This document shows, piece after piece, positions 28,944 to 63,698 of a stretch of 64,000 nt of DNA. The DNA comes from Orbicella franksi (lineage: Eukaryota): the NCBI GenBank assembly GCA_964199315.1, contig OZ116710.1, positions 1,984,001 through 2,048,000 of the forward strand, read 5' to 3'. Under the pieces are notes generated by a model. It did no database searches, was not told the DNA's origin, and saw only the letters and a program-made list of their open reading frames with translations. The position numbers were made by a program, and so were the translations under genes. Position 1 is the first letter of the stretch. Each line of letters begins with the position of its first letter.

Positions 28944-31900
28944 TCAGAAATTCACTGGTCTTATTTTCATCTCGGTCCTCTTCAGGGAGTAATTTCCTGC
29001 CTTCCAGGTTTTCCAGTTCACACCATCCGATATGCGAGAGGGATTTTCGTGACGATAGATACCATTCAGGTTAGATTTGTGACACCTCTTGTACCACCAG
29101 GCTCCGTGACGAATACTGGCACAGTTTTTGTCCTCATGGTTATCATTATCTTGATCACGAGTTGTAAACGGTTGACCGCGATGATAAAAAAGAGAGTTAC
29201 CAGCAGTTCCTAAAACATTACAGAAAGAAATGATTAACTATCATGCGGAAGAAAAAGGTAATAACGAAAGAAATCAGTTGTCCCAGCAATCTTTGCTACA
29301 CCTGTAAGTTGTCGAGAGTGGGGATGGTGGTCCGGGGAGTCTCCCCCCCCCCGGGATGGATTCTCTTCCAAACTTTCAGTAGTTCTAACTGTTATTTTAG
29401 CCACAAGATTTTGTATGCATAACTGAATGAATTTACAAAGGTGTTGTTTCTACAACTTAGCGAATAGAAACGAAGCGAATCACCTGAGTAAGAGCCGAGG
29501 ATCAACTTGTACTTGTCATTCTCACTCATAACACCAAACTTGTTATACTCGGCATAAGCAGTATTCCCTTCAAAGTCTTCCAAGTCCACACGCAGCATGC
29601 TGTTATTATCAGAGGTCAGGCGGTGGATTTTGTCCAGCCCGAGCCAAAATTCACCATTCAGATCACCAAAACCAACTTTGTAATCGCTCCAGTTAAGGAA
29701 AAAATCAACAGAACCGTCCAGTCTCTTCTGGAACACTGTCCACCCTCCACCGGCTGTTGTTTGGTCACAAAAGACATCAAAGGCAGGCAAGTTGTCAGGT
29801 TTGATGGTGTAAACACCGTCTTTTCTTTCACCAGATTTGTAGATTTCGCCGCAGTTTCTATAAGCTGAAAAAGAAAAGAAATGATAGAAATTTTGATATG
29901 GCGTAAGTTCTACCTGAAATAATATTTCCATTCGCGGAGGCAGCGTAAGTGCACTTTATGGTTTGAGTGCCAGACGAAACGGCGACGCAAACGCAGTCAC
30001 GAGCAGGTATTCCAGTTTTGCAGGTTGGAGGTTGAAATATCGCCATTAAAGTTCAAGTGAGTTTCCTAAGAATCAAGAGACCATGTAGTCTCTTGTCAGC
30101 ACTTTGATTAGCCTGAATGGCACTCCGGTAAGCCTAAAGTAGTCTAGGCTACTTGCGGTTAGGCTTTACATTGGGCTTAATCGATTTCACCTCGAATAAA
30201 CAAGTCCTTCCAACCAGCATAAAATACGTGCTGCTAAGTCACACAAATATGGTGATACAAACTTGTCTTTGTGTGGGCTTCGTGTCCAAGCACGAGATCG
30301 ACCCTGAGCCAGCTGCCCGCCGCTTGGGCAGAATAATAATTAAGGTTTCTCTCTGCCTTGTCAGGAAGCAGTGTTCATCATATACATAAAGCTGTTTGGA
30401 TTTGGCCCGGTAATACTCTGTCTCTATGGGCTTCTCGTTTCCTCTCTTACTGTTTGGCGCTGTTTGCTCGCCTATTCGACTTTGTCTCCTCCCCACAAAC
30501 TGTTTCTGGGTCTCCGGGGATTGAACTTTTTAAACTTTTCGTAACTGATATGCGTAAATTATCAGTGGCGGATCCAGACCTAGAGCCAAGGGGAAGGGGG
30601 CCCGGGTTTTGTTTTGCTTGCCCTGCCGACTTTTCTTCCCTCTGTGATTTCTCATTTTTACCCAGAATAAGGAGGGGGGCGGGCCTCCCGGGCCCCTCCC
30701 CTAGATCCGCCACTCATTATCATTATACATTACTTTCATTGCAAGTTGTTCCAGTGAATCCAGGGCGACAAAGACAACGAAAACCTTTACTGGTGAATCC
30801 AGCTTGACATGTGCCATTGTTCAAACATGGGCTGCTACTACAGGAATTCTGTTACGAGGGAAAAAGAAACGAGAGAAGCAAATTAATGATTTTTTTGTTA
30901 TTCACATATAAATACAACACTTATCATGATATATTTTCTAATCAGGATAGAAAGAAATATCAATGAATAACTATAATTGTTATATTTTTAGTCTGAGCTT
31001 TCTTGCCTTGTGTAACAACGAAATGTCATCTGTATCGCTGAAAATATTCAGCATACTTCTTTTCAATGATTAAAGACTATATTACATTACCTCAATTGCA
31101 AGATAGGTGAAAGATGGCTCATCAGCAAGGAAGATGGTCAATTGGTTTTCATCGGTTGCATTATTCAAATCGCACTTGTGTTTTCCTCCATCTGAAGGTC
31201 CCAAATTAATGGACACACAATTAGGCTCCATATAACACAACAGTCGACAGGTCCCTTCATTAGGGACCTCCTCACTCCTAATCACGTGATTCTTCATTGC
31301 TCTGTTTGCAACTGGCTCCTTGAATATAATGTTGCGGCATTCGTCGTCTGTGTGAATAAACAAAAATAAAATATCAAAATGACTTACTCTGATAAAACGT
31401 ATTTGCCTCCTGCTCACACGGTTTGATCGTTTTTATTTGTCGATATTTCCAAGCCACTCTTTTTCAATTGGGGAAAGAATATCCGTAAGTGCTGGTATCA
31501 TAAGGGAGAAGGGAGAGGAAGACTGTTAACGTTTATCAGTATTTTTTTCAGTACATTTCCCGTTACACAAATTATTACTCTGATAAAACGTTTTTGTGTC
31601 CTGCTCACATGGGCAGATCGTTTGTATCGCCATCCCAGAGTTTTTGGAATGTATAAAAGAATATCCACAAGGGCTGTTATCAGAAGAAGCAAAAACAGAA
31701 TGATGCGAATTCTTGCGGAAGTTTTAAAAGGGAATGGTAAAGTGTTCTATCTGTATTTTTTATACAGTCCATCAGGGCTTTCAAAGACAGTAAATCTTCC
31801 TAATATGATTAAAATTACCAAACGTTATATCCATGGTGAAGATCGGATCTGGAAAAAATACCTTAGAAACGTTTTCCCAGCTCGGTTAAGTTTGAATGAA

Positions 31901-32263
31901 AAATTATAAATTCTTTCCCTGCAAAATGTTATTTGTCTGAGTGAAAACGCCAGTTCAAAGATCTCCCCGTACGAACGAGTAAAATAAGCCGGTTTGCCTG
32001 CGTTTACATGTGTTCCACATCTGATATGCTAAAAGGAAGAAATAACACAACTTGGATTTTCGACTAAAGCGATATAATGTCTCGGAAACAAAATCAATTT
32101 GGCAGAAATATTAGAACCTTTGTAGAGCGCAAACTAAGAAACTGTGCCAATTAAGAGAGGAACACTTACCAAAGCAACCACAACATAATAGGAAAATGTT
32201 TCCAAACGAGATACAAAGGCAAAAGATGGTAGAAATGTCATGCTGAATCTCCAAAGGAGCCAT
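28944..32263 (-). CDS. FReD-1 (type I): signal peptide - PAN/apple - EGF - fibrinogen C-terminal domain, secreted lectin-like protein, about 370 aa, intact
   Basis: Exons 32263-32170 (MAPLEIQHDISTIFCLCISFGNIFLLCCGCF), 31347-31091 (PAN, CRLLCYMEPNCVSIN), 30848-30734 (EGF), 29864-29484 ([17 protein letters not shown]...GEFWLGLDKIH), 29209-28944 (GAWWYKRCHKSNLNG...TEMKIRP). All GT-AG; 1113 nt in frame. Confidence 0.88.
30563..30715. mobile_element. 153-bp CAGTGGCGGATC MITE with 5-bp TSD (ATTAT)
   Basis: TIRs CAGTGGCGGATC / GATCCGCCACTC. ATTAT at 30558-30562 and 30716-30720. The paralogous intron in FReD-3 (about 48810-48835) is the empty site. Confidence 0.85.
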
Positions 32264-32299
32264 TCTTCCGAATTCGGAGAGAAGTGTGCAAAGCGAACG

Positions 32300-36533: not shown

Positions 36534-37321
36534 TCCGCGTTTTCTCTCTACTAACTGAAGACAGTGCATGCGGTGAGTGGTAGACGGTCGATTGGGGTAA
36601 GCTTGCTATCTAACCAATGGTATCATTCAGAATTCAGTGCTCAGTTTTCAAATTTAAGTAGGGCATATAACAATCCGAACTAACCAATTTTAAAATATCC
36701 CCATTTTCAGCTGCAAAGTAATTTACAGTTATACGTCTTATACCACACCCTCTCTTTGTTTTTGACAAAAGCCTCTTAGAAAAGCAAAACATGAAAGTTC
36801 AGAAATTCACTGGTCTTATTTTCATCTCGGTCCTCTTCAGGGAGTAGAAGTTTCCCTTCCAGTGCTTCCAGTTCACACTATCGGAATCGGGCGAGGGATT
36901 TTCGTGACGATAGATGCCATTCAGGTTAGATTTGTGACAGTTGTTGTACCACCAGCCTCCGTGAAAAACCCTGGCACAGTTGCGGTTCCAGCTGTTATCA
37001 TTATCTTGATGGCGAGTTGTGAATGGTTGACCGCGATGATAAAAAAGAGAGTCACCAGCAGTTCCTAAAACATTACAGAAAAAAATGATTAACTATCATG
37101 CGCAAGACAAAGATGATGACGAAACGAAATCAGTTGTTCGAGCGATCAATTGTTGAAGGTGCGTGTTGTCGAGAGTGGCGGGGATGGTAACGATAGAGCA
37201 GAATGACTGGACAAGGAAACAAACGACAAGTATGAGGGTAACTATGACCACCTGTAAATAACGGATTATGATAATAAAGTGTATTATCGTTTGTCTCACG
37301 ATGTAGTCACTTGAGATGTAG

Positions 37322-37365
37322 ATCGCGACGTTTCGACTGCTTACTGCTAGTCTTCTTCAGGCGAT
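37322..37365 (-). ncRNA. Inverted copy of the same hammerhead (sense in the FReD-2 pre-mRNA)
   Basis: Exact reverse complement of 37588-37631. Confidence 0.7.
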
Positions 37366-37587
37366 AAGGTCGACTTCACCCTAACAACATCAACAGGGAC
37401 AGTGGAATTGAAATTCCTGAAGCATGGATACCCACGATCAAGAAACACAACAACAGGAGAACGGTACAACAGCGGACCACTGAGGGAACAGCTACTCGCC
37501 GGAACAATGGAACAATAGGAGGATCGAAATACACCAATCACAGCCGACCTTTGTGATATAAATGATACTGTGCAATTAGTCGACCTT

Positions 37588-37631
37588 ATCGCCTGAAGAA
37601 GACTAGCAGTAAGCAGTCGAAACGTCGCGAT
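37588..37631 (+). ncRNA. Minimal type I hammerhead ribozyme
   Basis: Stem I AUCGC/GCGAU, CUGAAGA (37593-37599), A, stem II GACU...AGUC, GAAAC, GUC cleavage triplet (37624-37626) within palindromic ACGU. Confidence 0.75.
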
Positions 37632-38529
37632 CTACATCTCAAGTGACTACATCGTGAGACAAACGATAATATACTTTATTATTGCATCTACCACGATGAA
37701 TAACAACAACCTTTTCCTCGACATTGAACGGATTATGATATAGAAAAAGAATGAAAAAAAAAAAACAACATAGAAAGCAAGAAATATGAATGCCTTATTT
37801 TGAAAAGGCAAGATCGCGGGTTAAGGGTTTCTATTTGTTGCTGGGGTTTTGTTGAAAAGTTCACTTTTCAAACTTTACTTTCAGCAGCCAAAGTTGTTGT
37901 TTTGAATCCCGGAATTTTATCCCGATAACTGTTGCGTAAAGGATACAGCTATGGCTTCAACAATCTGAGCTGACACGAAACGAAAAGTGGTTCACCTGAG
38001 TATGAACCGGGTTTCAGCTTGTACTTGTGATTCTCACTCATAACCCTGAACTTATCGTACTCGGCATAAGAAGTATTCCCTTCAAAGTCTTCCAAGTCAA
38101 CACGCAGCATGCTGTTATCATCTGAGGTCAGGCGGTGAATTTTGTCCAGTCCGAGCCAAAATTCACCATTCAGGTCACCAAAACCAACTTTATAATCGCT
38201 CCAGTGAAGAAAAAAATCAACAGAACCGTTCAGTCTCTTCTGGAACACTGTCCATCCCCCACCGGCTGTTGTTTGGTCACAAAAGACATCAAAGGCAGGC
38301 AAGTTGTCAGGTTTGATGGTGTACACACCGTCTTTTCTTTGACCAGATTTGTAGATTTCACCACAGTTATAGGCTGCAAGAGAAACGCAATGATGAAAAT
38401 TTCGATATGGCGCTGAAGTTTTCACCTGGAAGAAATGTTTTAATTTGCGGAGACCCTGCAGGCGCAGTACAAATATGGCGATAGGAACTTACTTTTGTGT
38501 ACACTGATCCATATGCAATTACGATTGAC

Positions 38530-38975
38530 AATTTCCACTACGAGTGATATTTGAAAATTCTCCGAAAATTGTCCAAGCCATTATGAGAGTGCAAATATCT
38601 CGAGCTTTCTTACGACTACATGTACCCTGTTTCTATCGAGTTATAGACACACCAGTGGAAGTTTGGGAGAACAAGAAATGCTGTGGGAACACGAGCCGCA
38701 GGCGAGTTTTTCCCCAGCTTTTTCGAGTTCTCCCAAACTTTCGCGAGTGTTTCTATAACTCGATAGAAACACGGAAAACATGTTTTCTATTTCTTTTAGA
38801 AAACACCGCGACGAAAAAAGAAAAACAGCTTGTCTACTTTGATAATAGATGTAAATTCCCTTTGCTCGCACCATCACAACGTCAACAGCTCATGCTAGTT
38901 CTGTGTTTCCATCGAGTTATAGAAACATGATTTTTAACCAGTCAGCGCGCGTATTTTCATAGGACTGTTTTCTTA
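38530..38975. mobile_element. MITE-like repeat with internal hairpin in a FReD-2 intron
   Basis: tttctatcgagttataga...gaagtttgggagaac versus gttctcccaaacttt...tctataactcgatagaaa. It is absent from the paralogous FReD-4 intron. Confidence 0.6.
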
Positions 38976-38984
38976 ATGACTAAC

Positions 38985-41900
38985 ATATACGAGGGCACCT
39001 GCATTAGGTTGCACAGCATTGTAATAACTCTGAATTTGTCTACTTTCAGTTAATCACAGTGAAGTAATTTCTCCGTCATATAACAAAGTAATGATAGTTG
39101 GACTGAGTAGAGTTCAAATCGGTTTTGGCATCGACCCGGCTGTCAATTCTTTGTCTTAGAAACAACGGACGGCGCCTGATGATTCCAATAATGTAGTCAA
39201 ACGAACCACTTCCCAAGAAGGGTATTTCGTAAGCGAGATACTATAGGAGAATCTTTGTTGATGTCATTGTTTACATTTTTCCTCATTAACATACGACTTT
39301 GTGCAGAGAAGGCATCACGGTAGACACGAATTGACTACAAACATCTAAAGAGCTTGTCACACTTAGTAATTGGTGAAATTCTTGGCTCTTTGGTTGAAAT
39401 ATTCGAGGGGAAATTGGCTTTACAAAACTGCAAAATTTTCTGGGTGGCAAAAGCGCTAATGAGCTCATATATTCTTTGTAAAATTTGGAGTTTCTAAACC
39501 CGCGTCGCACACGGAAAGTATTCGATACATCGGGCTCAAATTCCTTGGGACAGTAAATCATACTATGCCCTTTCAATGTTCAGAACACTTTCTGTAGCTC
39601 CATCAGAAACTGTACCGCTTATGCAATGAGGCAAATCTTATAAATAAAGATTATCCTATCCAAGAGATAGCAGACGTTTTACACGAAAAGATGAGTCAAC
39701 CTGAACATGAGCGACCATCTCCAGTAAATCCTTCCCTACAAGTACAGTTATGTCCGCCAACAGTGTTGGTGCAGTTTGCATTCACGTCACAGTCATGGTT
39801 GCCGGTGATACATTCATCGACATCTGCATTGCAAACGATTAAAAAAGAACTTTTCATTGTTATCAAGAAGATGAAAATGCTGTGATACTCATAGAGAAGT
39901 CCAGGAGTTTACTTCTATTTTAAACAGAGACGAAATCAACAAAATCAAAACCCAAGTCATACTAAAAACAACACTGAAATGGCATTAAAGTTGATTGTGA
40001 GTAACCTTTTAAGTCCATGTCACAATAAACCAAAACTGCCTTTCCATTCACAGTTGGATCCAGCCAGTACTTGCTGCTAATGGTGTCTATGCCTTCGCTT
40101 GCCTTTATTTCCTGACATGAATGCGCTGGGAGCTCCGGAATAGAACCCAGAGGAGCTTGGATCAAAAAAAAAGACAGGAAAAAAAATACAAATTTACCAA
40201 TTATACTGGTTGCTATTATGATAAATACAGTGTTTCTGTCGATCGAGGCTGATAGCTGTCCACAGAAATCTTGATTTTAATAAATAATAAAAACTGGGAA
40301 AAAGTCATCATTTCATCGAGATACGCCGACATAGAAATAAAATAAGTAATTACTTTCAGGGAACCATTACCCAGAAGACTTTCAGGGATGAAATTTGCGA
40401 AAATTTTGCAAATGGGCCCAATTAAAATTTGGCACTAGTTAGAAATTCCTCTCGAAGGAAAAAGCCCTTCAAGAGCATTAAAGAGCATTAAATTTTCGGG
40501 AAAACAACGTTTCATTATTTCGGGAAAATTTTAGGCATTAATAGAAATCGTAAGCACAGACACTTTTAAAACAATGACAGAAAATGGAAGTTTTATATTC
40601 TTCCTTTGGCGATAGCATTGGACTTCCGGTTGATATTCGAATCTGAGTTTAAACTTTCTTATTTTTTTCGCACATACCCCGGTTGCTCAAGCGTCTTTTG
40701 TAAAACCGTGCCGGATCTGAGCGGAAATGTTCGGGCCTTGCCTCCTTGGTGCGGTTATTTAGTTCGCACGACTTTTCTCCTAAGACGTAGTTATAGCTTT
40801 GACAGGTGATTTCTGTTTCACAGCTTATATCACACTCGTGAAGAGCTCTAGCGAAGAACTTTTTCAAGATGAACCCCTGTAGAGCCATCCCATTTATGCT
40901 CCGTTCCTCTCTGCATTGCTTGCCAGCAGATACCGATCCATACAGAAGCCGGCGAAGAGAAAAAAGCAGCGAACGGTCCACAGCATTTTCCGGGACTTTT
41001 AATTTGTAACTGTGGGGAGATTAACACAAACAAAACTACTAATTTTAGGAAAGACATTCACGAAACTCAAGGCATCGTTCAATTAATAGGCTCCACCAAA
41101 AAATCATTGGCTCTTTCTGGCTTGTCTTGGGTACTTGAAAGCCGGAGTTTTTTAAAGTCCTTGGTTGCACTAACCTTTCTGGCTCACGTTTTCTTCTTCC
41201 TCGATTTTTTATGGCAACGTAACAGAGAAATAAAATAGAAAATAGTATCATACAGTACGAGTATTATAAAAACATTTTTGCAACATACGTTGTGGGTGAG
41301 TTAAGTTTTGTAAATAGCAGAATTAACAACCAATATAAACTTACTGAAAGATAGCGGTTGGGCGAGATACTGTGATGGGGGTCTTGCAAAGCTCAGCCTG
41401 TTAATGAGCATAAGCAGCTTGCACACCAGCTGCAGCAAACTATTATGATGAAATGTAACTTTATATTTTATTCGAAAATTGAAGACCTCCGGGCAATGTT
41501 AGTAAGAACTACTTAATTTTCCTTTATTCAAATTTGAATTAATAGTGAAAAGCTTTCTTTTTTGTAAAACCAGCCCCAGGATGTCATTAATGTTTCTAAT
41601 TCTGTTTCTAATTCTTCCTTTTGTGTTCCCGCTACACCCTGCACTGATCTCGTAGCCGCGCTGTTTTGGGGAAAATAAATTGATGTTTTTAGAAAGGGCG
41701 TTTTGTTTATGTTCCTGTCTGCGTGTGAAATAATTTCAGACAATGCTTTCGACATTCACTAGTTGTTATGGTTTATTTGCAACACGCGGTGTTCCCTTTG
41801 TGGGAAATTATGTAAGAATTAAACCACAAAAAGAATATTTGAGGTGGCTGGTTATACTTTGATAGATCAATACTACCAATCTTTATCAAGTGATGTTGAT

Positions 41901-42010
41901 AGTGGTATCACAATCATGCCCAATTATTGGTGAACATATTTAGCTTATCTTTGTGACTTAATAGGCTACCATATAGGAGCAGTAAAACCTGCTAAAAAGT
42001 TAGGACCTTA
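38985..42010. repeat. Segmental duplication, paralogous to about 59580-62650 (type II 5' half with introns)
   Basis: Introns and exons are colinear at high identity, for example cattaggttgcacagcattg...aagttaggaccttatt in both blocks. Confidence 0.92.
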
Positions 42011-42859
42011 TTAATAAAGCAACGACTTGGCGACCCTTATATTTTGTTATCGAAATGTGACAAGCATGTAAAGATAAAACTCTTTGTAAAGTTTAAAATA
42101 TTCTGTTAAGGGGCTCATGTTAAATTTTCGACAATTCTAAAAAGGTGACTCTGAATTCACGAAAGGATTTTTTTCAACTTTGCAAAGGAGTTTTATCTTA
42201 AAATGCATATTACAATTCAATAATAAACAATGTGTTTCACCGAGTCGTTTTTGAATTATAAGTTCTTAAAGCTAACGGGTGCCTCGTTGCCATGGTGACC
42301 TTAATATCTGCCATAAAGATAAATGACTGGGCATTTGTGTGATAATAATATTCTAACCACCTTGACAATGCCCTAGCAAATGCTTTCCTTGGCAAAAACT
42401 TAAAATTATATGATGAAAAACTATCGAGGAAGTTTAAATCATTTGCTTTGAAATGGCCGTTCTCTTATAGTCACCGATAAAAGATGGGTTGAATTTCTTT
42501 TAGTTAATTTTAGTTTTGAAAGAACAACTCTTAATTTCGGGAAATTTTGAGAGCGGTATAAATCTCTTATGATCCAACAAATTGGGCGTCAAGACTCTGG
42601 GCTCTGAAGTGAGACTTTCCCAAGTTCGTTTAGCAAGAAACTTGGGTGTAAAGCAAAAACATTCAAGTTTGAATATTGAAGATTCAAATCTGAGTAAAGA
42701 AAAACTATTGCTGGGATTGTGTTAGCTAGGGATTTTTCGTGGTGCGTGTAGTTATACAACAGTTTAGTGTAGGCAATAACCTGTAATCTTTATCGTTCCA
42801 TACCTGTTTAATTACGTTTAGAGAAAGATATTGAACGTCATGAGAACTATAAAGAGGAG

Positions 42860-44378: not shown

Positions 44379-44384
44379 AGTATA

Positions 44385-47104: not shown

Positions 47105-50061
47105 TTAGAAATCCAATGGTCTCATTTTCATCTCGGTCATCTTCAGTGAGTAGGATGCTCCCCTGAAGCCCCTCCAGTTCACACCACCACCAAAGGGCGA
47201 GGGATTTTTGTGGTGATAGATGCCATTCAGGTTGGATTGGTGACAGTTATTGTACCACCAGGCTCCGTGAAACCTCTTAATAATAATAAATAAAACGCTT
47301 TAATAGCTGACACAAATTACTGGTAACCCAGTAGTTTACATTGTGGGCTAAAAAAAAAAAAATTATTTAGTTAAAAAATGTTAAAATATTGAAGAAGTTA
47401 AAATATAATACAGCATGCACATAAAATGTATTCGAATATATTACAAGACATTTTGAAAACGTTCTAGAGACGGTAAAGTCATCATTATCTTGATCTTGAG
47501 TTGAAAATGGTTTACGGCGATGATAAGAGAAAGAGTCACCAACAGTTCCTGAGACATTGGATTAAAAAATGAAGCTAATATGAGCAAGGCAAAGTTGACA
47601 ATGAGAAGAAATTGTCCGAGTGAACGTTGTTTACACGTGTGTGTTCGGGAGAGTGGGAATGGTGATAATACAGTGTTCTATGACGATCATGTCATTCTAA
47701 AAAGCAGAATGACTAGACACATCCCTTGATCACGAGGAACGAAGCGATAAATATGAATGTGATTACATTGTTAAGAAGCTAATTGTAATTAAATGCTAAC
47801 GGATTGTGAAGTTAAAAAATAATCAATGTGAATACAGAGCGTCATTTTAGAAAGCAAAGAACGAGAGAAAACCCTTTTACAAAAGCTGAAGGCTTTCATT
47901 TTTCTCCAAGGGGTTGCCAAATTCGCTTTTCAAATTTTCATTTGTCCTTGTTGTTTTGTCCAGATTTTGTATCTACAAGAGTAGCTAAAAATTTATAAAG
48001 CTGTTCTTTCAACAAACTTAGAGCACTTGAGTAATAGTCAAGGATCAGTTTGTACTTGTCAGTCTCACTCATAAACCAAACTTGTTATACTCGGCATAAG
48101 CAGTATGTTCTTCAAAGTCTTCTAAGTCCACACGCAGCATGCTGTTATCATCTAGACTTGCCATCTGATGTCAGGCGGTGGATTTTGTTCAGTCCGAGCC
48201 AAAATTCACCATTCAGATCACCGAAACCAGCCTTGTAATCGCTCCAGTCAAGGAAAAAATCAACAGAACCGTCCAGTCTCTTCTGGAACATTGTCCACCC
48301 CCCACCGGCTGTTGTTTGGTCAGGTTTGATGGTGTACACACCGTCTTTTCTTCCGCCAGATTTGTAGATTTCTCCACAGTTTTTGTAAGCTGCCGAATCT
48401 GCAAGAGAAAAGAAATGATTGAAATTTTGAGATGGAGCGATTTTGTACCTGAAACAAATCGCGGAGACCCAGCAGGCGCTATTTATGGGGAGTGGAAAGT
48501 CGAAACGGCGAAGAAAAAAGTCACTCAAACATTGCAATACGTACTTGCCTTTGAGTGGGCTCTGAATTCACAGACGAGAGGAACTTTGCTCTGATGCTCA
48601 CCGATTAAGAAGAATAATCCAACGAATTTTTTCTGCCTTGTCAGGAGAGCTGCAAGGCCCAGTGTGACTCTCTCCCCAGGGCAACTCGCTTTCTTTTAGC
48701 TTCTACTTTTCGCGGCCATTTTTTTCCTTCGCCGTGTCGTCTTTTCTTGGTCTCCATCAACTGTTCCTGGGTCTCCGACGATTGAATATTTTGAACTTTC
48801 AGAAATTGATATGCATAAATTATCAGTATACATTACTTTCGTTACAAGTTGTTCTAGTGAATCCAGGGCGACAAAGACAACGAAAACCTTTACTGGTGAA
48901 TCCAGCTTGACGTGTGCCATTGTTCAGACATGGGCTGCTACTACAGGGATTCTGTTCAGAGAGAGAAAAAAACGATGGAAGCAAATAAATGACTAGACGT
49001 TATGGATTGTATATATTGTACTGAAATATTTCTAGATCAGGAGGAAAAAAAAATTGAATGATTTACAATTTCTTATGTATGTTTACTCTTAGCTTTCTAG
49101 TCTTGTGATTTATTTAACAAATGCATGTGTCGCCGAAAATATTCAGCATAACTCTGTATAACTAGTTAAGACTGTTTTACATTACCTCAATGGCCAGATA
49201 TGTGTAACTTGGTTCATTGTCAAGAAAGGTGATAAACTGGTTTTCATCCGTAGCATTTTTCAACTCGCATTTATGTGTTCCTCTCTTTAAAGGTCCCAAA
49301 TTGATGGACACACAATTGGGCTCCATATAACACAACAGTCGACAGGACCCCTCGTTAGAGACCGCCTCACTCCTGATCACGTGATTCTTCATTGCTCTGT
49401 TTGCAACTGGTTCCTTGAATATGATGTTGCGGCATTCGTTGTCTGTGAGAAACAAACAAACAAAAAATATCTAAATGGCTTCCTCTGATAAAAATATTTA
49501 CCTTCTGCTCACACCGGCAGATCGTTTCTATCGCCGTGCTGTTATCAGAAGGGAGAAGGGAGGGTTACAATGCTTCATGATCTGTGTTTTTTCCAGTATA
49601 TATCTTTCACAGACATTGAATCTTTCTGTGATACAAATTATCCAACGTTTTCCATAATGAAGATAAGATCTTGAAAGAAAATCGAAAAGTTTTTCTAGGT
49701 TGTGTAAGTTTGCGAAAAGGGAAAATGTTATTTTTCTGGGTGAAAAGGCTTTCACGAAGATCCTGTGCGACCAGACAATGAGTAAAATAAGTCGGTTTGC
49801 ATGCGTGTATTCCTGAGATGTGGAAATGAAGAGATTGTAGAACTTAAACTTTTAACTAAAGCAGATTTAATGTTTTGGCGACAAAATGAATTTAGCAGAG
49901 ATATGAAAAAGTCTTGGTTAGCGCAAACTAACAGACTGAGAAAACTACAAGAAACTGAAACACTTACCAAAGCAACCAAGACATAATGGGAATATGTTCC
50001 TAAACGAGATGCAAAGGCAAGAGATAGTAGCAATGTTATGCTGAATCTCCAAAGAAACCAT
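47105..50061 (-). pseudogene. FReD-3 (type I) pseudogene: signal - PAN - EGF - fibrinogen
   Basis: Exons 50061-49968, 49442-49186, 48951-48837, about 48398-48027, and 47548-47105. Lesions: EGF Cys to Arg, 30-nt deletion (NLPAFDVFCD), 13-nt insertion giving a premature stop at 48148-48150, further frameshift, and a roughly 200-bp insertion in the last exon. Confidence 0.88.
47274..47480 (-). mobile_element. AT-rich retroelement 3' end inserted into the last exon of FReD-3
   Basis: It replaces about 30 nt between gtgaaa and atcattatc of the paralogous exon. The minus strand ends attaaagcgtttt(att)n. Confidence 0.55.
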
Positions 50062-53221: not shown

Positions 53222-55572
53222 TTCTTGCTCTAGGTATGCTGCGGGAAATATCAGAGAATATTCAGAATGCTAAGATCTTTACAATAATGGCCGATGAGAC
53301 AGCAGATGTGTCTGTCAAGGAGCAACTAGTTGTGTGCATTCGTTGGGTTAACGACAAGTTTATTATTCATGAAGACTTCATGGGGATGTTGCCATTGCCG
53401 AGAACCACTGGTGATCAGATCGTAGAAACACTAAGGGACGCACTGCAGCAAATGAATCTCAATATTCAGAATGCTCGTAATCAATGCTATGATGGTGCTG
53501 TAACAATGGCCGGTGAGAAAACTGGAGTGGCAACAAAGATTAAATCTGTCAATGCAAAGTGTTTGTATACACACTGTTAGGGCCGTGCCTTGAACTTGGC
53601 TGTTGCTGATGCCATAAAATCAGTGAAATGTATGAGTGATGCACTTGATACAATCAGAGAAACTGGAAAGGTGGTGAAAAACACACAATTAGATAAAACT
53701 AAGGAAGAAACCGCAAATGAATCTCGCGGAGTTCATGCTCTTTGCCCCACGCGATGGACTGTTTCGTGGCGAAGCATTAGCATTGGTGCTAAACAACCAT
53801 GGTGAACTCGATCATGGAGCTTTGGGATTGGTCACTTGAGGTATTGAAAGACACAAAAATGAAATCGAGAATCACTGGTGTGAAAAGTGTAATGACACAG
53901 TTTAGTTTTTTCTTTGATTGTTGCTTAGGCGAGAAAATTTTGCGACAAACCGACAACTTGAGCCGTGCTTTGCAGAGTTCTTCAATTTCAGCAGCTCAAG
54001 GAAAAATACTGGCTCGGGATGTGGTTAAAACCTTCTTACCAGATCGAAGCGATGAGTCATTTGATCTGTTTTGGCATCGCATCTTACAGAGAAAAGACAA
54101 GGAAATCAAGTTTATTGAAGACCCCGTGCCTCCGAGAAAGAGAAAAGCACCGGAAAGATTCGAGCTTGGAAACCAAGAAATTCATCATTTTCCTCAAACC
54201 GACAAGGAACACTACAAACGAGTTTATTTTGAAGCCATTGATTTTGCAACTACCGCCGTCACATCAAGATTTGACCAGAAGGACTTTACAGTGTACACAA
54301 ACCTCCAGGAGCTCCTTTTGAAGGCTACTACCAAAGAAGTGTATGATGCTGAACTGGCCGAAGTTTTGAAAGTTTATGGTAAAGATTTAGATGCCTACCA
54401 ACTTGCATTGAAGGCCAGCTGTTACTCCTCCCACAAGTCGCTGCCTCAATGGGGTTTGACACGTCAAGATTCAACATTGATGACCTAATATCATTTTTTC
54501 AGTCAATTGATGATTCCCACAAATTGCTCCTGTCTGAGATTTGCACACTGGGCAAGTTATTGTTGGTAATGCAGCGATGAATGCCGCAAGTGAGCGGTCA
54601 TTTTACGCTTTAAAGTGCGTAAAGACATATCTCCGTTCAACAACTGGAGACGCAAGGTTGAACCATCTCATGATGCTTCACATCCACAGGGACAAGACTG
54701 ACACGACTGACCTGGTAGCTGCAGCCAACCAGTTTGTTGGCAAACAGGAGAACAGAAAACAGTTGTTCGGGACATTTACCCCAAATGATTTGCCACGAAA
54801 ACTGTCTTTCCTCTCGCATGCAACCCAAACATCCGAATGAAATGAAATGGTTCGTGGGGTCTATGTAATAGGTAAGTAATTTATTTATTACACAACACTG
54901 TCAATTTGTATAATAAACCTGTTCAATTAGGAGAGTACAACGTTCATGTAACATATCCGATCAATGACTTTAGTCAGTTAAACATTGTTGTAAACTGCTC
55001 TCAGAAGGCTGGAAAGGCTATTTTACAGAGCCCAGATTTCAAAATCTCCCGGGGGGTGGGGGGCATGCTCCCGGACCCCCCTAGAAGCTCTTGCCTTCGG
55101 CACTCGGTCGGGTGCCCCCAATAGATTTTACCCTGCTACGACACTGTCATGATTAACAATGGGACTCCCGCTTCGCGGTCGTTCAATTTTGTTAATCAGT
55201 CGTATGATATCCCTGCCTCTAGGATATTTTCACTTTGCAACATTTTTTTTACAGTTTTATTTATTTGCAATACAAATTACAATTTACCATGACAACTTAC
55301 ACTACCCGCGTATAAAGCGTAGGCTAATCGAGACGGGCAGCTTAACACATGATAATATCATAAGACTATAGTAAGTTTTGATTATTGCATAGAGAGATCT
55401 TAACAATAAAAGTTTTTTACATGTTGTTTATTATAGACTTTCCTCTTTCGTTTGCCTTTTACGGCATTAAGCGAAACAGTTTCTCCCTAGATTAAACTCC
55501 ATGTTTGCCTGAGCATGCGCGTACTCGTCGTTGAATTGCAATTTTCATGATCTGTATATATCTATCTTTATG

Positions 55573-55680
55573 TCTATGTCTGTCTGTGTGTGTCTGTGTC
55601 TGTGTCTGTGTCTGTCTGTGTCTGTCTGTGTGTGTGTCTATGTCTGTGTCTGCGTCTATGTCTACTGCTATTTCCATGTC
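55573..55680. repeat. Compound TGTC/TG/TCTATG microsatellite just 3' of the FReD-4 stop
   Basis: Read directly. It explains the low-complexity ORFs 55574-55873 and 55590-55949. Confidence 0.9.
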
Positions 55681-55716
55681 TATTCTGCGTAAGATTGTTG
55701 CATGTCTTTACAAAGC

Positions 55717-58700
55717 TTAGAAATCCTCTGGTCTTGTTTTCATCTCGGTCTTCCTCAGGGAGTATTTCCTTCCCTTCCAATTCTTCCAGTTCACACCAAC
55801 ACCAAAGGGCGAGGGATTTGTCTGATGATACTTGCCATTCAGGTTGGATCGGTGACACGGGGAACTGTACCACCAGGCCCCGTGAAACGTGCTCGCACAG
55901 TGTACCTCTCCTTGCTCGTTCGTATGTTGATCATTATCTTGATCTTTAGTGGAAAATGGTTGATCGCCATGATGAGAAAGAGAGTCGCTAGCATTACCTG
56001 AATATCAAATTAAGGTCTAGATAACAGCAGACATGTAAATATTTTAAGGAAAACGACCAATTTTTTAAGTTTGCAAGACATGTTTCGACAGAGCTTCTGT
56101 CATCTTCAGTTGAATGAATGATTACAAAGCAAGTTGAATAATAAGTAGGCAGAAATGCTAATTAAGACAAATAGTAACAACAGAACGTGAAAAGGTGTCA
56201 GTTAAAAGGATAATTTTAGATTTACATGGTGTAATTGCTGATTGAGGGAAGGTAGTTCTTTTTGAATATGAATAGCCTCCTTTATCTTGAGTTGAAAGCT
56301 GGTAGTGGCGTGATCTAAAATATGAAAGCAGTCTATTGAACACAATGAGCGACAACGTTCAGAATTCTGAAGATGTTTGAAGATGTGAGAGGCCCTATCA
56401 ACGGCTAAGTGCTCACGTACGCGTGTGGAAAAATGTCGGGAGGTTTCGCCGACATAACAGGCATTACAGCCCGCACATGTAAACTTATAAACCACACGTG
56501 AACGAAGCCCGTCGGGGATAGGGTCTTTCACACCAAAAAGGTTACCTATCTTGAAGGAAGAAAAAACTAATTTGATGTCTAAATCATTACAATAGCGCTT
56601 GATTAAGTGTCGAATCTTCTTCTGAGTGATGACAGAAAAATGGCCTATGTATGGCAGCTTAAAGTAAAACGTGGGCGAGGTGGTAAGGGGGTAGCCCCGG
56701 GGACAATGATTGCTATGGGTCCCAGTGATGTAACGGTTAACCACTTTTTCAATTAAATGGGCAGGGAAAAGGTTCTTTTTGAGAATTTCAGTAAGCTTGG
56801 TTATATCCTCGTGTAACCCCAACCAAGTGTTGTTGATCTTGTAGGCCCTGTCAACAAGAGTCCTAATGAGACCTACTTTGTATGAGTGCGAGGTGAAGCT
56901 AAAATAATTAGTTAATAACCCAGTAAAGGTTTTCTTACGGTTTTCTTCCTTCAAGATAGGTAACCTTTTTGGTGTGAAAGACCCTATCTCCGACGGGCTT
57001 CGTTCACGTGTGGTTTATAAGTTTACATGTGCGGGCTGTAATGCCTGTTATGTCGGCGAAACCTCCCGACATTTTTCCACACGCGTACGTGAGCACTTAG
57101 CCGTTGATAGGGCCTCTCACATCTTCAAACATCTTCAGAATTCTGAACGTTGTCGCTCATTGTGTTCAATAGACTGCTTTCATATTTTAGATCACGCCAC
57201 TACCAGCTTTCAACTCAAGATAAAGGAGGCTATTCATATTCAAAAAGAACTACCTTCCCTCAATCAGCAATTACACCATGTAAATCTAAAATTATCCTTT
57301 TAACTGACACCTTTTCACGTTCTGTTGTTACTATTTGTCTTAATTAGCATTTCTGCCTACTTATTATTCAACTTGCTTTGTAATCATTCATTCAACTGAA
57401 GATGACAGAAGCTCTGTCGAAACATGTCTTGCAAACTTAAAAAATTGGTCGTTTTCCTTAAAATATATCAAATTAAAAAATGAATAACTGTCATGCGAGA
57501 CCGAGGTATTCCATATTCCGTTAAATTGTTCAATATTTTTCGAAAATTAGCCTGTTCTAAATGCCCCATATCCCATTATTCATGTTTCCCCTAAATATCT
57601 CATATCCCGATTTATTTTTACTAATATCCCATATCCCAGAAACGCCTAATAGGGCCACCATTTGGTTGGTTTACGATACGCCTGGGGTGGGGAGGAGGGG
57701 GGTACGTCCGTAAATTTCGGATGTGTCCCAGGGGTCTTCAACTTTGACCCTATTTAAGGATGAAGCAAACGCCACCCTATCACGGGGAAAAACAAAAACC
57801 AAGAATAGCGTGAACGGTTCAACTAAATTTCGTTTCATTGGAAATTACAAATAGTTAAGTCTTAACAGATTTGTTTAGCTGGGCTACCCTACAGTAAAGA
57901 ATCACACCGGGAATACAATGCCAACGGGGGCAAAAATAACACACTATTTAAGGATCGACAACGTTAAAAACCATACCCTATCCCGCGGCATATATGCATA
58001 GCTATATAGTCCATATATGGGAGTACCCCTCCCGGGACGATACGATTACATTGTAGAACGTTGGACCGTTGAAAGTTAATCCTTTTGATATTCCCTGACG
58101 TCACTTTCGAATTCCTTATAAGGAAAATTTAACAAGTACAATATTTGCGTGTTATACAGTAGATTGTTGTGTTTCCATGGTTTCACTTCAGAGGGCCCGA
58201 ATTGAATAGTGGGTTACTTACTATTTACATGGGAAAACCGGAAATTCCAGTTGGAAAATCAAATATTTCGCGCCATTCCGTTAGGAAAGCTCCAGAAAAT
58301 ATGGGCTGTGATTTAGGGTGATGCTATTGTTCTGCTCTTTTAAGTCTCTCTAGTTGATGTGGATATACTTTATAGCGATTCCCTCTCCCGCAACGTCGCA
58401 TTTAATTTTTTAATGTTTAAGCCTGAAATTTCCAACCGGATGGTTTTTGTAAATGGTAAGCACCCCTGGAATACCATTCAAAAAGCAAATTGCTTACTCT
58501 GGGTTTTATCGGTGATAGGTATGGACATTTTATTGATAGATTGTGTCTTTTCATGGTCAGTCGTCTTACGACTTTCGTGACATCCTCTCCTATCCCATCC
58601 CATCCCGTCCTGGATTGGTTTTTCAGCCCTTATGGTGATTAAACCCCCCTTTCAACCTTGTAAGTCACTCATCACTAACTCTTAGCTTCCGTTTACAACA

Positions 58701-61613
58701 TTTTATGTGCAAAATAATGGTCAAATTTTAGGCTGTTTGAGAGTTGAAGATTAACCTTTGTAACTCTCGGTGAGAGTTGACAAAACTGTTTTTCAACTTC
58801 GAAAGTCCTCGCTGTTGCTTTTACCTACAGGATTTCGTATCTACAGCCGTGTACACGAAAAAGGACAAAATTATACGTTTAAAGGCCGAGACAACTGATC
58901 TTTTTTAAATTAAGTCACCTGAGTATGAACCGAGTTTCAGCTTGTACTTGTCATTCTCACTCATAACACCAAACTTGTTATACTCGGCATAAGCAGTATT
59001 CCCCTCAAAGTCTTCCAAGTCCACACGCAGCATGCTGTTATTATCTGAGGTCAGGCGGTGAACTTTGTCCAGTCCGAGCCAAAATTCACCATTCAGGTCA
59101 CCAAAACCAACTTTGTAATCGCTCCAGTTAAGGAAAAAATCAACAGAACCGTCCAGTCTCTTCTGGAACACTGTCCATCCCCCACCGGCTGTTGTTTGTT
59201 CACAAAACACATCAAAGGCAGGCAGGTTGTCAGGTTTGATAGTGTACACACCGTCTTTTCTTCCGCCAGATTTATAAATTTCTCCACAGTTTTTGTAAGC
59301 TGCCGAAGCTGCGACTTGCTGTTCTGATCATATACAATATCAACCATCAGTGCCCAACCTCAAAAATGTTTTAATGGAAAAATGGCACTTGATACAAAAT
59401 CAGCCTTCTCTACGGCAAATTTTCAAAGAGCCACCACTAATATCGTATAAAAGAGGTAAATCCCTAAAAGACATACTCGTAAGAGCAAAACTATAAAGGG
59501 GTCATATCATGTAAGTTACATGGTACAAAAGTTTCCATTGTTAGAAGTTGTGCAGGCCTGTCACTCCTTGCTAATTCCTACATTAGGTTGCACAGCATTG
59601 TAATTACTCTGAATTTGTCTGCTTTCAGGCAATCACAGTGAAGTAATTTCTCCGTCATATAATAAAGTGATGATAGTTGGACTGAGTAGAGTTCAAATCG
59701 GTTTTGGCATCGACCCGGCTGTCAATTCTTTGTCTTAGAAACAACGGACGGCGCCTGATGATTCTAATAATGTAGTCAAACGAACCACTTCCCAAGAAGG
59801 GTATTTCCTCAGCGAGGTACTATAGGAGAATCTTTGTTGATGTCATTGTTTACATTTTTCTTCATTAACATACGACTTTGTGCAGAGCAGGCATCACGCT
59901 AGACACGAATTGACTACAAACATTTAAAGAGCTTGTCACATTTAGTAATTGGTGAAATTCTTGGCTCTTTGGTTGAAATATTCGAGGAGAAATTGGCTTT
60001 ACAAAACTGCAAAATTTTCTGGGTGGCAAAAGCGCTAATGAGCTTACACATTCTTTGTAAAATTTGGAGTTTCTAAACCCGCGTCGCACACGGAAAGTAT
60101 TCGATACATCAGGCTCAAATTCCTTGGGACAGTAAATCATACTATGCCCTTTCAATATTCAGAACACTTTCTGTAGCTCCATCAGAAACTGTATCGCTTA
60201 TGCAATGAGGCAAATATTATAAATAAAGATTATCCTATCCAAGAGATAGCAGACGTTTTACACTGTTATTACAGCTTGCCCAAGTTTTACACGAAAAGAA
60301 GAGTCTACCTGAACACGAGCGACCATCTCCGGTAAATCCTTCCTTACAAGTGCAGTTATGTCCGCCAACAGTGTTGGTGCAGTTTGCATTCACGTCACAG
60401 TCATGGTTGCCGGTGATACATTCATCGACATCTATAGTGCAAACGATTAAAAAAGAACTTTTCAGTGTTATAAAGAAGATGAAAATGCTGTGATACTCAT
60501 GGAGAAGTCCAAGAGTTTACTTCTATTTTAAACAGAGACGAAATCAACAAAATCAAAACTCAAGTCATGCTAAAAACAACACAGAGAGGACATGAAAGCT
60601 GATCCTCAGTAACCTCCTAAGTCCATGTCACAATAAACCAAAACTGCCTCTCCATTCGCAGTTGGATCCAGCCAGTACTTGCTGCTAATGGTGTCTTTGC
60701 CTTCGCTTGCCTTTATTTCCTGACATGAATGCGCTGGGAGCTCCGGAATAGAACCCAGAGGAGCTTGGATCAAAAAAAGGGAGGAAAAAAAAATACAAAT
60801 TTACCAATTATACTGTGGTTTCTGTTATGATAAATACAGTGTTTCTGTCGATCGAGGCTGAGAGCTGCCCACAGAAATCTTGATTTTAATAAAATATTAA
60901 AAACTTGGAAAAAGTCATCATTTCATCGAGATACGCTGATATGGAAAAAAAAAATAAGTAACTACTTTCAGGGAGCCATTACCCAGAAAACTTCCAGGGA
61001 TGAAATTTGCGAAAATTTTGCAAATGGGCACAATTAAACTTTGGCACTAGTTAGAAATTCCTCTTGAAGGAAAAGCCCTTCAAGAGCATTAAAGAGCATT
61101 AAATTTTCGGGAAAACAGCGTTTCATTACTCCGGGTAAAATTTTAGGCATTAATAGAAATCGTAAGCACAGACACTTTTAAAACAATGACGGAAAATGGG
61201 AGTTTTATATTCTTCCTTTAACGATAACATTGAACTCCCGGTTGATGTTCGCCTCTCAAACTGGCGTCTGTGTTTAAGCTTTCTTATTTTTTTTCGCACA
61301 TACCCCGGTTGCTCAAGCGTCTTTTGTAAAACCGTGCCGGATCTGAGCGGAAATGCTCGGGCCTTGCCTCCTTGGTGCGGTTATTTAGTTCGCAGGACTT
61401 TTCTCCTAAGACGTAGTTATAGCTTTGACAGGTGATTTCTGTTTCACAGCTGATATCACACTCGTGAAGAGCTCTAACGAAGAACTTTTTCAAGATGAAT
61501 CCCTGTAAAGCCATCCCATTTATGCTCCGTTCCTCTCTGCATTGCTTGCCAGCAGATACGCGATCCATACAGAAGCCGGCGAAGAGAAAAAAGCAGCGAA
61601 CGGTCCACAACAT
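55717..61613 (-). CDS. FReD-4 (type II): signal+PAN - 50-aa module - EGF-Ca - fibrinogen domain, about 414 aa, reading frame intact
   Basis: Exons 61613-61304 (MLWTVRCFFLFAGFCMDRVSAGKQC...CQSYNY...CELN), 60763-60614, 60431-60309, 59299-58919, 55997-55717. GT-AG; 1245 nt. Both fibrinogen-exon acceptors have retroelements immediately upstream. Confidence 0.78.
56074..56112 (-). ncRNA. Inverted copy of the hammerhead (sense in the FReD-4 pre-mRNA)
   Basis: Reverse complement of 57393-57431, about 80 nt upstream of the terminal-exon acceptor. Confidence 0.72.
57393..57431 (+). ncRNA. Minimal hammerhead ribozyme in the pLTR
   Basis: caa-CUGAAGA (57396-57402)-U-GACAGA-agc-UCUGUC-GAAAC-AU-GUC (57426-57428)-uug. 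Perfect 6-bp stem II; palindromic ACAUGU stem III. Confidence 0.75.
57685..58470. mobile_element. Two adjacent MITE-like elements in the FReD-4 fibrinogen intron
   Basis: About 57685-58037: ggggggtacgtcc...gggagtacccctcccggg termini. About 58220-58466: gggttacttactatttac...gtaaatggtaagcaccc imperfect TIRs. Confidence 0.55.
59330..59575 (+). mobile_element. 3' fragment of a Penelope-like element whose ORF stops before any GIY-YIG domain
   Basis: Translates IQYQPSVPNLKNVLMEKWHLIQNQPSLRQIFKEPPLISYKRGKSLKDILVRAKL* (stop near 59495). Not present in the FReD-2 paralog intron. Confidence 0.7.
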
Positions 61614-63369
61614 TTTCCAGGACTTTTAATTTGTAACTGTGGGGAGATTAACACAAACAAAACTACTAATTTTAGGAAAGACATTCACGAAACTCAAGGC
61701 ATCGTTCAATTAATAGGCTCCACCAAAAAATCATTGGCTTTTTCTGGCTTGTCTTGGGTACTTGAAAGCCGGAGCTTTTTAAAGTTCTTAGTTGCACTAA
61801 CCTTTCTGGCTCACGTTTTCTTCTTCTGCGATTTTTTACGGCAACGCAACAGAGAAATTGTCGACTCCGGCGTAATAAAATGGAAAATAGTATCAGACAG
61901 TACGAGAATTATAAAGATTTTTTTCCAACACACGTTGTGGATGAGTTAATTTTTGTGATAGCAGAATTAACAACCAATATAAACTTACTGAAAGATAGCG
62001 GTTGGGCGAGATACTGTGATGGGGGTCTTACAAAGCTCACCCTGTTAATGAGCATAAGCAGCTTGCACACCAGCTGCAGTAAACTATGACGTTGAAATGT
62101 AAGTTTATATGTTATTGGAAAATTGAAGACCTCCGGGCAATGTTAGTAAGAACTACTTAATTTTCCTTTATTCAAATTTGAATTAATAGTGAAAAGCTTT
62201 CTTTTTTGTAAAACCAGCCGCAGGATGTCATTAATTTTTGTAATTCTGTTTCTAGTTCTTCCTTTTGTGTTCCCGCTACACCCTGCACTGATCTCGTAAC
62301 CGCGCTGTTTTGGGGAAAATAAATTGATGTTTTTAGAATGGGCGTTTTGTTTATGTTCCTGTCTGCCTGTGAAATAATTTCAGATAATGCTTTCGACATT
62401 CACTAGTTGTTATGGTTTATTTGCAACACGCGGTGTTCCCTTTGTGGGAAAATATGTAAAATTAAACCACGAAAAGAATATTTAAGGTGGCTGGTTATAC
62501 TTTGATAGATCAATACTACCAATCTTTATCAAGTGATGTTGATAGTAGTATCACAATAATGCCCAATCATTGGTGAACACATTTTGGTTCTCTTTGTCAC
62601 ATAATAGGCTACCATAGCAGCAGTAAAACCTGTTAAAAAGTTAGGACCTTATTACTCCATCGTCGTCTTTGAAAAACAAAACAAAGCATAAAATTTATTA
62701 ACTTCATGCTTATACAAAAGCTGATTTTTTTTATAGGTCTGCAAGCGGAGTTTAAAAGTTTATATATAGCGTGTCATTAAGCGCTGCTAAAAGAGGAAGC
62801 AAAACTAAAGCCCAAATTAATTGCGGACGTTTTAGAGAGCAGGTGATAAAAAATATGCTGTATATCTCTTTTACTGGTGGCAGATCATTCCATTAGCAGC
62901 AATACCGAATTCAAAGTACATATTAATTATTGAAACAAACTTTTGTCTGAATCACCAACGTAAAAGTTATTCGAAACGCAGCAAAAATGTGTGTCAGGGA
63001 AACTTTTCGGGGTTATAGTCTCCGAGGTAAAGAACAAGTCAATACGCACGGTTGATATCAGTTGAATCTCGCTATTTCTAATCGAACTCTCAGGGGAAAC
63101 GGAAAATAGTTCTGAAATTACGGGGTCCAACTTTGTCTGACATGTCAGAGCAGGCGATAATGCAGAGAATTTAACTAGAGTAGATCTAATTATTTACATG
63201 CAAAATCAAGAGATGTGGAAAACCTACTAAAATTAAGAAAAATAGGGTAGGTGTAGAGTTAATGGTTCACGCTGGTGGAAAAGTGGAACAGTACACGGCA
63301 CCGCGGCGGGCTCAGGTGTTTGGAGGATGTAGTTCATGGTGTGAGTGTCGATAGTGCCTTACGATGAAG

Positions 63370-63545
63370 TGCATTAACTCAGCATTTTATCAGGTTCCTT
63401 TAGTAATTCACCAATCGCCGGGGCTGAGACAGTTAAGAGAGTAGAGTGGCTTCCCAGGAAAAGCAACACTGGCCAGAGCTAAAACCCCGAATTGTTCGAT
63501 CCGGACCTGAGACAACCTCACTAGCATTCGGGTTACCGCACCTCC
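63370..63545 (-). mobile_element. Degenerate tRNA-derived SINE
   Basis: The minus strand begins GGAGGTGCGGTAACCCGAATGCTAG...CCGGATCGAAC (tRNA-like head), followed by the SINE body. Confidence 0.55.
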
Positions 63546-63598
63546 TTTGGAGAATATTCTTGTGATTCTGCACGTTACACATTAAGAAATGTACTTAC

Positions 63599-63698
63599 CA
63601 GAGCAACCAAAACATAGTGGGTATATGACTCCAAGCGAAACAGTCAGGATACATACAATAGTTGCGATTTTACACTCGGAAATCTGAAAAGAAGCCAT
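63599..63698 (-). CDS. Orphan type I-like signal-peptide exon (MASFQISECKIATIVCILTVSLGVIYPLCFGCS|G), phase-1 donor GTAAGT
   Basis: Similar pattern to the first exons of FReD-1 and FReD-3 (ends LCxGCx + G|GTAAGT). No type I PAN exon follows before FReD-4. Confidence 0.6.

Follow-up and report, generated by a model that had tools for sequence, protein, structure and literature searches.

How do neighbouring genes of one coral array come to have front and back parts with different closest relatives? This question is raised by a 64,000-nucleotide stretch of DNA from Orbicella franksi (C13:1984001-2048000, where C13 is contig OZ116710.1 of the 497-Mb assembly GCA_964199315.1), which we refer to as the window and number from its first letter. 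An earlier note made from this sequence alone had described four genes encoding fibrinogen-related domains (FReDs); all four are present, on the minus strand between 28944 and ~62000, and their domains were confirmed by Pfam. Type I genes are laid out as signal peptide, PAN, EGF, first fibrinogen exon (exon A) and second FReD exon including the stop codon (the last exon). Type II genes consist of a signal peptide joined to PAN, followed by COLFI-like, cbEGF, exon A and last exon. We refer to the four window genes as g1–g4. Our analysis also took in 110 kb beyond the window (C13:2048001-2158000) and a second cluster, and we denote the further array members as g5–g14 and those of the inverted cluster as b1–b8. 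We consider it likely that these genes form a large tandem FReD array evolving by birth-and-death, in which unequal crossing-over and gene conversion have given rise to chimeric genes.

Two histories within the FReD genes

The 5′ halves of the window genes pair by type, as the earlier note had proposed. Genes 1 and 3 are 81% identical over 720 bp, with an additional weaker stretch, and genes 2 and 4 are 92.9% identical over 3.1 kb, introns included. The last exon follows a different pattern, also as claimed, and pairs gene 1 with gene 2. In the quartet of window genes, 12 informative sites support the split 12|34, compared with two for 13|24 and one for 14|23. Identity in the last exon is 85% for genes 1 and 2 versus 75–77% for the other pairs, and the last 15 codons are identical in these two genes. 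Their 3′ flanks are homologous over ~2.1 kb at 80%, although the description of the 3′ untranslated region (UTR) as near-identical was overstated, its proximal part reaching ~92%.

Phylogenetic trees and approximately unbiased (AU) tests covered 18–21 copies, with the constraint groups fixed from the other segment before each test. The tree of the 1.36-kb type II 5′ module resolved as (g2,(g4,g10)) with support of 100/99. The last-exon tree contains three supported clades that mix the types: g1 (I) with g2 (II) and g6/g12 (II), supported at 100/99; g4 and g10 (both II) with g8 and g14 (both I), again at 100/99; and a clade of the inverted cluster that includes b5 (I), at 96/94. Forcing the type I genes together in the last exon costs 147 log-likelihood units (p 3e-63) and forcing g2 with g4/g10 costs 71 (p 0.0014), while the reciprocal test on the 5′ module costs 128 (p 2.6e-5). 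The AU test therefore rejects congruent per-segment trees in both directions. Between g2 and g10, synonymous distance rises from 0.12 in exon A to 0.335 in the last exon. The non-coding introns and flanks form discrete classes that cut across the division into type I and type II.

The earlier note had read a third history from exon A, in which gene 1 was paired with gene 4. The underlying counts were right (five amino acid differences between genes 1 and 4, versus ten plus an indel between genes 1 and 2), but the pairing itself fails. Only one informative site of exon A supports 14|23, compared with seven for 13|24 and three for 12|34, all three of the latter within the first 36 nt. The synonymous distance between genes 1 and 4 is the largest found (0.32, compared with 0.30 for genes 1 and 2, 0.12 for g2 and g10, and 0.095 for g4 and g10), whereas their non-synonymous distance (dN) is only 0.019. 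The small number of amino acid differences thus reflects purifying selection on the protein sequence rather than kinship; the disabled genes 2 and 3 simply gathered replacements in exon A while genes 1 and 4 stayed conserved. In the maximum-likelihood tree of 21 exon A copies, gene 2 groups with g4/g10, repeating its position in the 5′ half, and no partner of gene 1 is supported. A clade of g1, g4 and g10 is absent from this tree but is not rejected (p 0.19). The informative sites, the synonymous distances and the tree together rule out exon A as a carrier of a third history. There are two robust histories, not three, and exon A follows the 5′ half.

The pairwise homoplasy index (PHI) test, in our own implementation with 2000 permutations, gave p <= 0.0005 for exon A, based on 58 informative sites. 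The same test gave no signal in the last exon (p 0.27), nor in the class-b genes alone (g4, g8, g10 and g14; p 0.11 on only nine sites). Non-allelic recombination or conversion, as the earlier note had proposed, is supported by the AU and PHI tests and by the clustered differences between g4 and g10 described below. Its suggestion that three units re-assort independently stands for two units, since exon A travels with the 5′ cassette.

To place the breakpoints we compared the window, in steps of 200 bp, with all copies (painting); a table of segment classes built by single linkage did not resolve the last exon and 3′ flank finely enough, and painting and trees were used for these instead. Gene 2 is g10/g4-like (93–98%) from its 5′ end to the exon A donor; its g1/g6-like part starts ~120 nt ahead of the last exon, and the ~800 bp in between are mostly g2-specific inserted sequence. 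From its 3′ end, gene 1 is similar to g2 and g6/g12 over the flank and last exon, to g6/g12 over the short intron, and to many copies (92–96%) over exon A; the next intron is unique, and the PAN-EGF region is similar to b5 (87–93%). Comparison of g10 (type II) with g14 (type I) shows no alignable sequence upstream of exon A; identity is 86–94% over exon A with the proximal part of the intron and 98–99% in its distal part. Type I and type II neighbours that carry one last-exon lineage are also found in g8/g14 with g4/g10 and in b5 with b1/b8. The main breakpoints therefore lie in or next to exon A and the following intron, likely because exon A is the one stretch common to all copies (~90–96%). 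The introns flanking exon A are of phase 1 in both types, so that an exchange would join any 5′ cassette plus exon A in frame to any last exon.

Short patches in gene 4 add a finer level of mosaicism. Outside these patches g4 and its duplicate g10 are ~99–100% identical. One patch covers approximately the first 92 nt of exon A, where g4 differs from g10 by eight substitutions and a 3-nt (one codon) indel; differences number 8/91 before the cut and 3/287 after it (Fisher 0.00075, with the cut chosen post hoc). This patch adjoins a 1.57-kb deletion relative to g10. The other lies in the last exon and proximal 3′ UTR, where 320 bp (55600-55920) hold 26 of the 76 differences found between g4 and g10 across 4 kb, versus 6.1 expected (Poisson 1.6e-9). 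Within it g4 groups with g14 and g10 with g8 (97/96), against the flanks. Both patches are foreign to the g10-like surroundings, as expected of gene conversion. If g4 and g10 represented two haplotypes, their differences would be allelic and imported from paralogues, which would still be gene conversion. Also near exon A, the upstream intron of g10 (C13:2100210-2101800) contains three copies of a sequence matched at 99% by g4 59300-59500 and exceeds that of g4 by 1.57 kb; this tandem repeat is collapsed or deleted in g4.

Extent and state of the array

The window holds the edge of the array with its first four members. At least 14 minus-strand genes follow one another at ~10-kb spacing, in the type order I, II, I, II, II, II, I, I, I, II, II, II, I, I. 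The alternation of types on which the earlier note had remarked is thus real inside the window but stops at its end, an accident of where the window was cut. At a distance of 260 kb there is an inverted array of eight genes, of which a single one is type I, further copies occur at 3.7–4.0 Mb, and the contig contains at least 30 close copies of exon A. Exon A is broken in 7 of 22 copies and the last exon is missing in 5 of 22 (g7, g9, g13, b4 and b6). We also observed two last exons ~1 kb apart at b7 (C13:2396146-2397440), one intact and one disrupted. Orphan and missing last exons are consistent with breakpoints in the preceding intron.

These tandem paralogues also show a higher-order organisation: genes 3–8 and genes 9–14 are the two copies of a 58.5-kb, six-gene repeat. 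Its aligned blocks, in window numbering extended beyond the window, are 59315-94760 versus 117801-153231 (35.4 kb, 99.59%) and 48319-56013 versus 106680-114393 (7.7 kb, 97.7%). The 99.6% block extends approximately from the last exon of g4 to that of g8. It may represent a duplication of very recent date or a homogenised tract of great length, or else a tandem assembly of two haplotypes. The duplicates differ by a 1.45-kb insertion as well as the 1.57-kb deletion. In the spacer between genes 3 and 4, the plus strand carries a run of long open reading frames (ORFs) of up to 231 aa (52360-54837) that may be a candidate transposase-derived gene. This stretch recurs at ~92–100% in the g9-g10, g7-g8 and g13-g14 spacers and hence belongs to the duplicated unit.

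Only g1 and g4 are intact among the four window genes. Gene 2 has a 1-nt deletion between 40933 and 40934 (codon 18-19, in the signal-peptide region), and its reading frame ends after 30 codons. All 12 of the other type II copies have one extra base at this site, and the frameshift is read from this one assembly. Exon A of gene 3 carries a 30-nt deletion as well as frameshifts and stops, and the last exon of this gene is interrupted by ~180 bp. The coding exons of g4 are undamaged, and a fold-back insertion of ~1.45 kb (56002-57476) lies a few bases from the last-exon acceptor, within the preceding intron. Its arms (56039-56564 and 56941-57466) are 526 bp long and 99.8% identical, and the insertion is absent from the duplicate g10. 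Another insert, specific to g2 and with internal repeats at 99%, sits in the equivalent intron of g2 (37100-37900). Both insertions are situated in the module-breakpoint intron. In g1, the intron between the EGF exon and exon A includes a very high-copy short repeat (30584-30757; summed contig depth ~3900 versus ~30 in the flanks).

Probable birth-and-death evolution and its alternatives

The proposed course of events would comprise segmental duplication, including that of the six-gene repeat, unequal crossing-over with exchange points in or beside exon A and the following intron, and short-tract gene conversion; gene 2, with its g4/g10-like front and g1/g6-like last exon, would be one chimera formed in this way. 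The mosaic structure, the incongruent trees, the clustered patches and the intact reading frames of g1 and g4 are seen directly; we infer non-allelic homologous recombination from such end products, and any benefit of new combinations would be presumptive. This pattern is expected from birth-and-death with unequal crossing-over in any tandem family. In the KIR, opsin and Lepore-type globin hybrids of vertebrate tandem families, exchange in a conserved segment or intron fuses the front part of one gene to the rear part of a paralogue, and the array grows or shrinks as a result. Those hybrids belong to another protein family and phylum. Clustered immune families, including Sp185/333 and snail FREPs, diversify by duplication, unequal crossing-over and conversion according to three reports (PMC5103432, PMC8634487, PMC2935394). 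The sea-urchin Sp185/333 (SpTransformer) genes are unrelated in sequence to the coral FReD genes.

Several points weigh against this explanation. The exchange mechanism is read from its outcome. Because exon A is short and the tree backbone weak, breakpoints inside exon A are not placeable, and the cut points of the conversion tests were chosen after the data had been seen. The 99.6% repeat could be two haplotypes stacked in tandem, which would make g4 and g10 alleles and reduce the number of independent genes. Short-read contigs break in exon A (depth 380–900), so that independent data leave the two halves of g1 unlinked. A published survey also describes gene conversion as very rare among coral tandem duplicates (Noel et al. 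2023, PMC10236652). Relative to that survey, the present locus is a local counter-example, a clean and statistically supported case of chimeric gene formation and conversion. It also shows that FReD proteins with different N-terminal modules can swap the ligand-binding exon in frame.

Two of the alternatives deny that the genes themselves are recombinant. Mis-joining of paralogues or haplotypes during assembly could have produced apparent chimeras, and a 58.5-kb repeat at 99.6% is typical of regions in which haplotypes become stacked in tandem; the breaks of short-read contigs in exon A point the same way. However, the chimeric partners differ by 4–25%, too much for a mis-join between near-identical repeats, and chimeras of this kind recur at three separate sites, each time with different sequences. 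The unique joints of g1 (29214-29424 and 29818-30215) are matched with zero mismatches by contigs from two further public DNA runs; the results of these runs were almost the same, and either of them may come from the very sample that was assembled. The insertion and deletion that distinguish the higher-order duplicates argue likewise against a purely technical origin. We therefore regard an artefactual origin of the chimeras as unlikely, indeed highly improbable, and retain the 99.6% repeat as a candidate for haplotype stacking. Differing trees could also be mimicked, in principle, by duplication with unequal rates and selection, and this accounts well for the apparent pairing of exon A of genes 1 and 4, with its low dN and high synonymous distance. 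Such an account is barely tenable for the locus as a whole, given the rejection of a common tree by both AU tests, the intron and flank classes that cross the division into types, and the three-fold difference in synonymous distance between the halves of g2.

The remaining alternative concerns purpose rather than process. The earlier note had envisaged a germline combinatorial system that diversifies a secreted immune lectin by re-assortment of N-terminal cassettes, scaffold exon and binding exon. If such a system were selected, the array would be maintained for this diversification, with pseudogenes and orphan last exons as donor templates. The last exon encodes the P subdomain with the Ca2+ site and binding loops. 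Its omega is 0.4–0.97, compared with 0.06–0.47 for exon A, and in the class-b copies it is less conserved than the flanking intron. The most variable stretches follow the Ca2+-site motif and coincide with the segment aligned to ‘SYADG’ of FIBCD1 and tachylectin-5A, a stretch that holds the Tyr-Ala of the acetyl pocket in those lectins. This segment is not conserved in the window FReDs, being replaced and different in almost every paralogue; acetyl specificity can therefore not be assumed. Such variability is consistent with selection on the binding face being either relaxed or diversifying. A selected system would be in keeping with these features, with the phase 1 introns around the FReD exons that keep exchanges in frame, with the patch in intact g4 that matches the pseudogene lineage g9/g7/g13, and with the orphan second last exon at b7. 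Yet every one of these features is equally expected under neutral birth-and-death, and omega does not rise above 1 over any whole exon. About a third of all copies are disabled, among them two of the four in the window, and two units rather than three re-assort. The alignments, to which the search was confined, revealed no special recombination signal or enzyme at the breakpoints, and no somatic variants such as belong to dedicated receptor-diversification systems (V(D)J, VLR, templated Ig gene conversion). Ligand binding and an immune response would be attributed to these proteins by homology. Nothing points to a dedicated or selected system. We consider a selected combinatorial immune system possible though improbable; as it stands, the locus is an ordinary birth-and-death family with half of its window copies dead. 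A related conjecture, which we hold to be doubtful, is that exon A and the following intron act as a recombination hinge, with pseudogenes and orphan last exons as donor reservoir and with pairings of N-terminal cassette and binding exon that vary among individuals and populations of this coral; this would be a templated germline diversification of a cnidarian recognition lectin, maintained by selection. Should the products turn out to recognise microbes or symbionts as lectins, the locus would be a good site for a study of repertoire evolution in corals.

Encoded proteins, coordinates and neighbouring sequence

Pfam searches of the exon ORFs identified Fibrinogen_C across two exons, PAN_1 and EGF/EGF_CA, together with a weak match to the COLFI N-terminus in genes 2 and 4. 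The Fibrinogen_C domain (PF00147) is complete, with exon A matching profile positions 2-137 (E 6e-49) and the last exon 134-220 (E 3e-28), so that 2-220 of 221 positions are covered. The 115-nt exon of type I genes was revealed by RNA contigs and matches EGF (E 7.5e-9). When aligned to g1, RNA contigs from a public coral run show splicing at the type I exon junctions, and the g1 introns 31348-32169 and 29865-30733 correspond to joints in such contigs. Some of them differ from g1 and may originate from a paralogue or another species; they are not g1-specific. The PAN domains of the two types share ~34% identity over 47 residues; the two N-terminal cassettes diverged anciently.

The best PDB matches of both FReD exons (E 4e-26 and 8e-39) are human FIBCD1 (4m7f), ficolin-1/-2, tachylectin-5A (1jc9) and MFAP4. 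Hallmarks of the P subdomain (DQDND, C...WWY..CH and NLNG.Y) align with FIBCD1, ficolin-2 and tachylectin-5A, and the acidic motif of the Ca2+ site, the Cys pair and CH..NLNG.Y are shared with acetyl-binding FReD lectins. Ficolins carry a collagen stalk and FIBCD1 a transmembrane/coiled-coil region, whereas the window genes have a PAN and EGF N-terminus instead. No Collagen repeat and no Ig domain was detected by Pfam on the exon ORFs scanned, which sets these genes apart from ficolins and from snail-type FREPs, respectively, while relatives in Exaiptasia combine Collagen with Ig. Biomphalaria FREPs contain IgSF domains and have reported somatic diversification, whereas the analysis of the coral array covered its germline structure. 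The FReD family also includes non-immune members such as angiopoietins, tenascins and MFAP4. The products are probably secreted and, by homology, may have a lectin or immune role.

Exon A is 73–76% identical to its nearest named homologues, from the stony corals Stylophora, Porites and Oculina. The parts of Stylophora pistillata XP_022802252.1 (ryncolin-2 / ficolin-2-like), namely PAN, COLFI-like and Fibrinogen_C, map one-to-one onto g2 exons, although this model is without the cbEGF module; the architecture family is thus already in databases. Oculina patagonica MFAP4-like proteins combine EGF and Fibrinogen_C, and the Porites lutea homologue is annotated as FIBCD1-like. The annotations of these three corals describe neither an array nor a chimeric structure. 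A protein search with exon A returned multi-FReD proteins as the leading matches and no full-length model of these genes, and a literature search found no paper on a coral PAN-EGF-FReD array. Elsewhere in the genome we found no full-length closer relative of g1, only matches to its separate pieces. Among other sequences of the assembly, C4:6.14-6.31 Mb contains at least five copies of PAN and EGF exon pairs (L023 4729-5360, L024 4516-5026) with 76–84% protein identity to the type I cassette. The ORFs that come after these pairs have neither a Pfam match nor an FReD (L023 7935-8776), which suggests that the type I cassette is common to another gene family.

Table 1. Coordinates of the FReD genes, their modules and patches, in window numbering.
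Feature	Position	Strand	Basis or remark
Gene 1, type I, intact, 370 aa	28944..32263	-	complete ORF, all introns GT-AG
Gene 1 exons	32170-32263 signal peptide; 31091-31347 PAN; 30734-30848 EGF; 29484-29864 exon A; 28944-29209 last exon including stop	-	Pfam PAN_1, EGF, Fibrinogen_C
Gene 2, type II, frameshifted	36799..40986	-	Pfam domains; layout agrees with Stylophora homologue
Gene 2 exons	40678-40986 signal peptide and PAN; 40006-40155 COLFI-like; 39701-39823 cbEGF; 37996-38373 exon A; 36799-37064 last exon	-	
Gene 3, type I pseudogene	47105..50061	-	translations and alignments
Gene 3 approximate exons	49969-50061 signal peptide; 49186-49442 PAN; ~48838-48951 EGF; 48027-48389 exon A; 47105-47548 last exon	-	
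Gene 4, type II, coding exons intact, 414 aa	55717..61613	-	complete ORF, GT-AG introns
Gene 4 exons	61304-61613; 60614-60763; 60309-60431; 58919-59299; 55717-55997	-	
3′ module of gene 1 (flank, last exon, part of intron)	26985..29328	-	homologous to gene 2 34400-37188 and g6/g12; self-blastn 80–87%
5′ module of gene 2 (exon A through PAN exon and upstream)	37992..42013	-	93–98% to gene 4 58915-62654 and g10
Breakpoint interval of gene 2	37188..37992	-	word-7 blastn of introns; no paralogue match at 37100-37900 in painting
Converted patch, 5′ end of exon A, gene 4	59207..59310	-	identical to pseudogene lineage g9/g7/g13
Divergent patch, last exon and proximal 3′ UTR, gene 4	55400..55920	-	compared with otherwise near-identical g10

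Just upstream of the array edge, a divergent pair of ORFs encodes histones H2A (minus strand) and H2B (plus strand) at 20256-21395. Between the histone pair and the array, the plus strand contains a 239-aa ORF (24503-25219) whose product is acidic and serine-rich.

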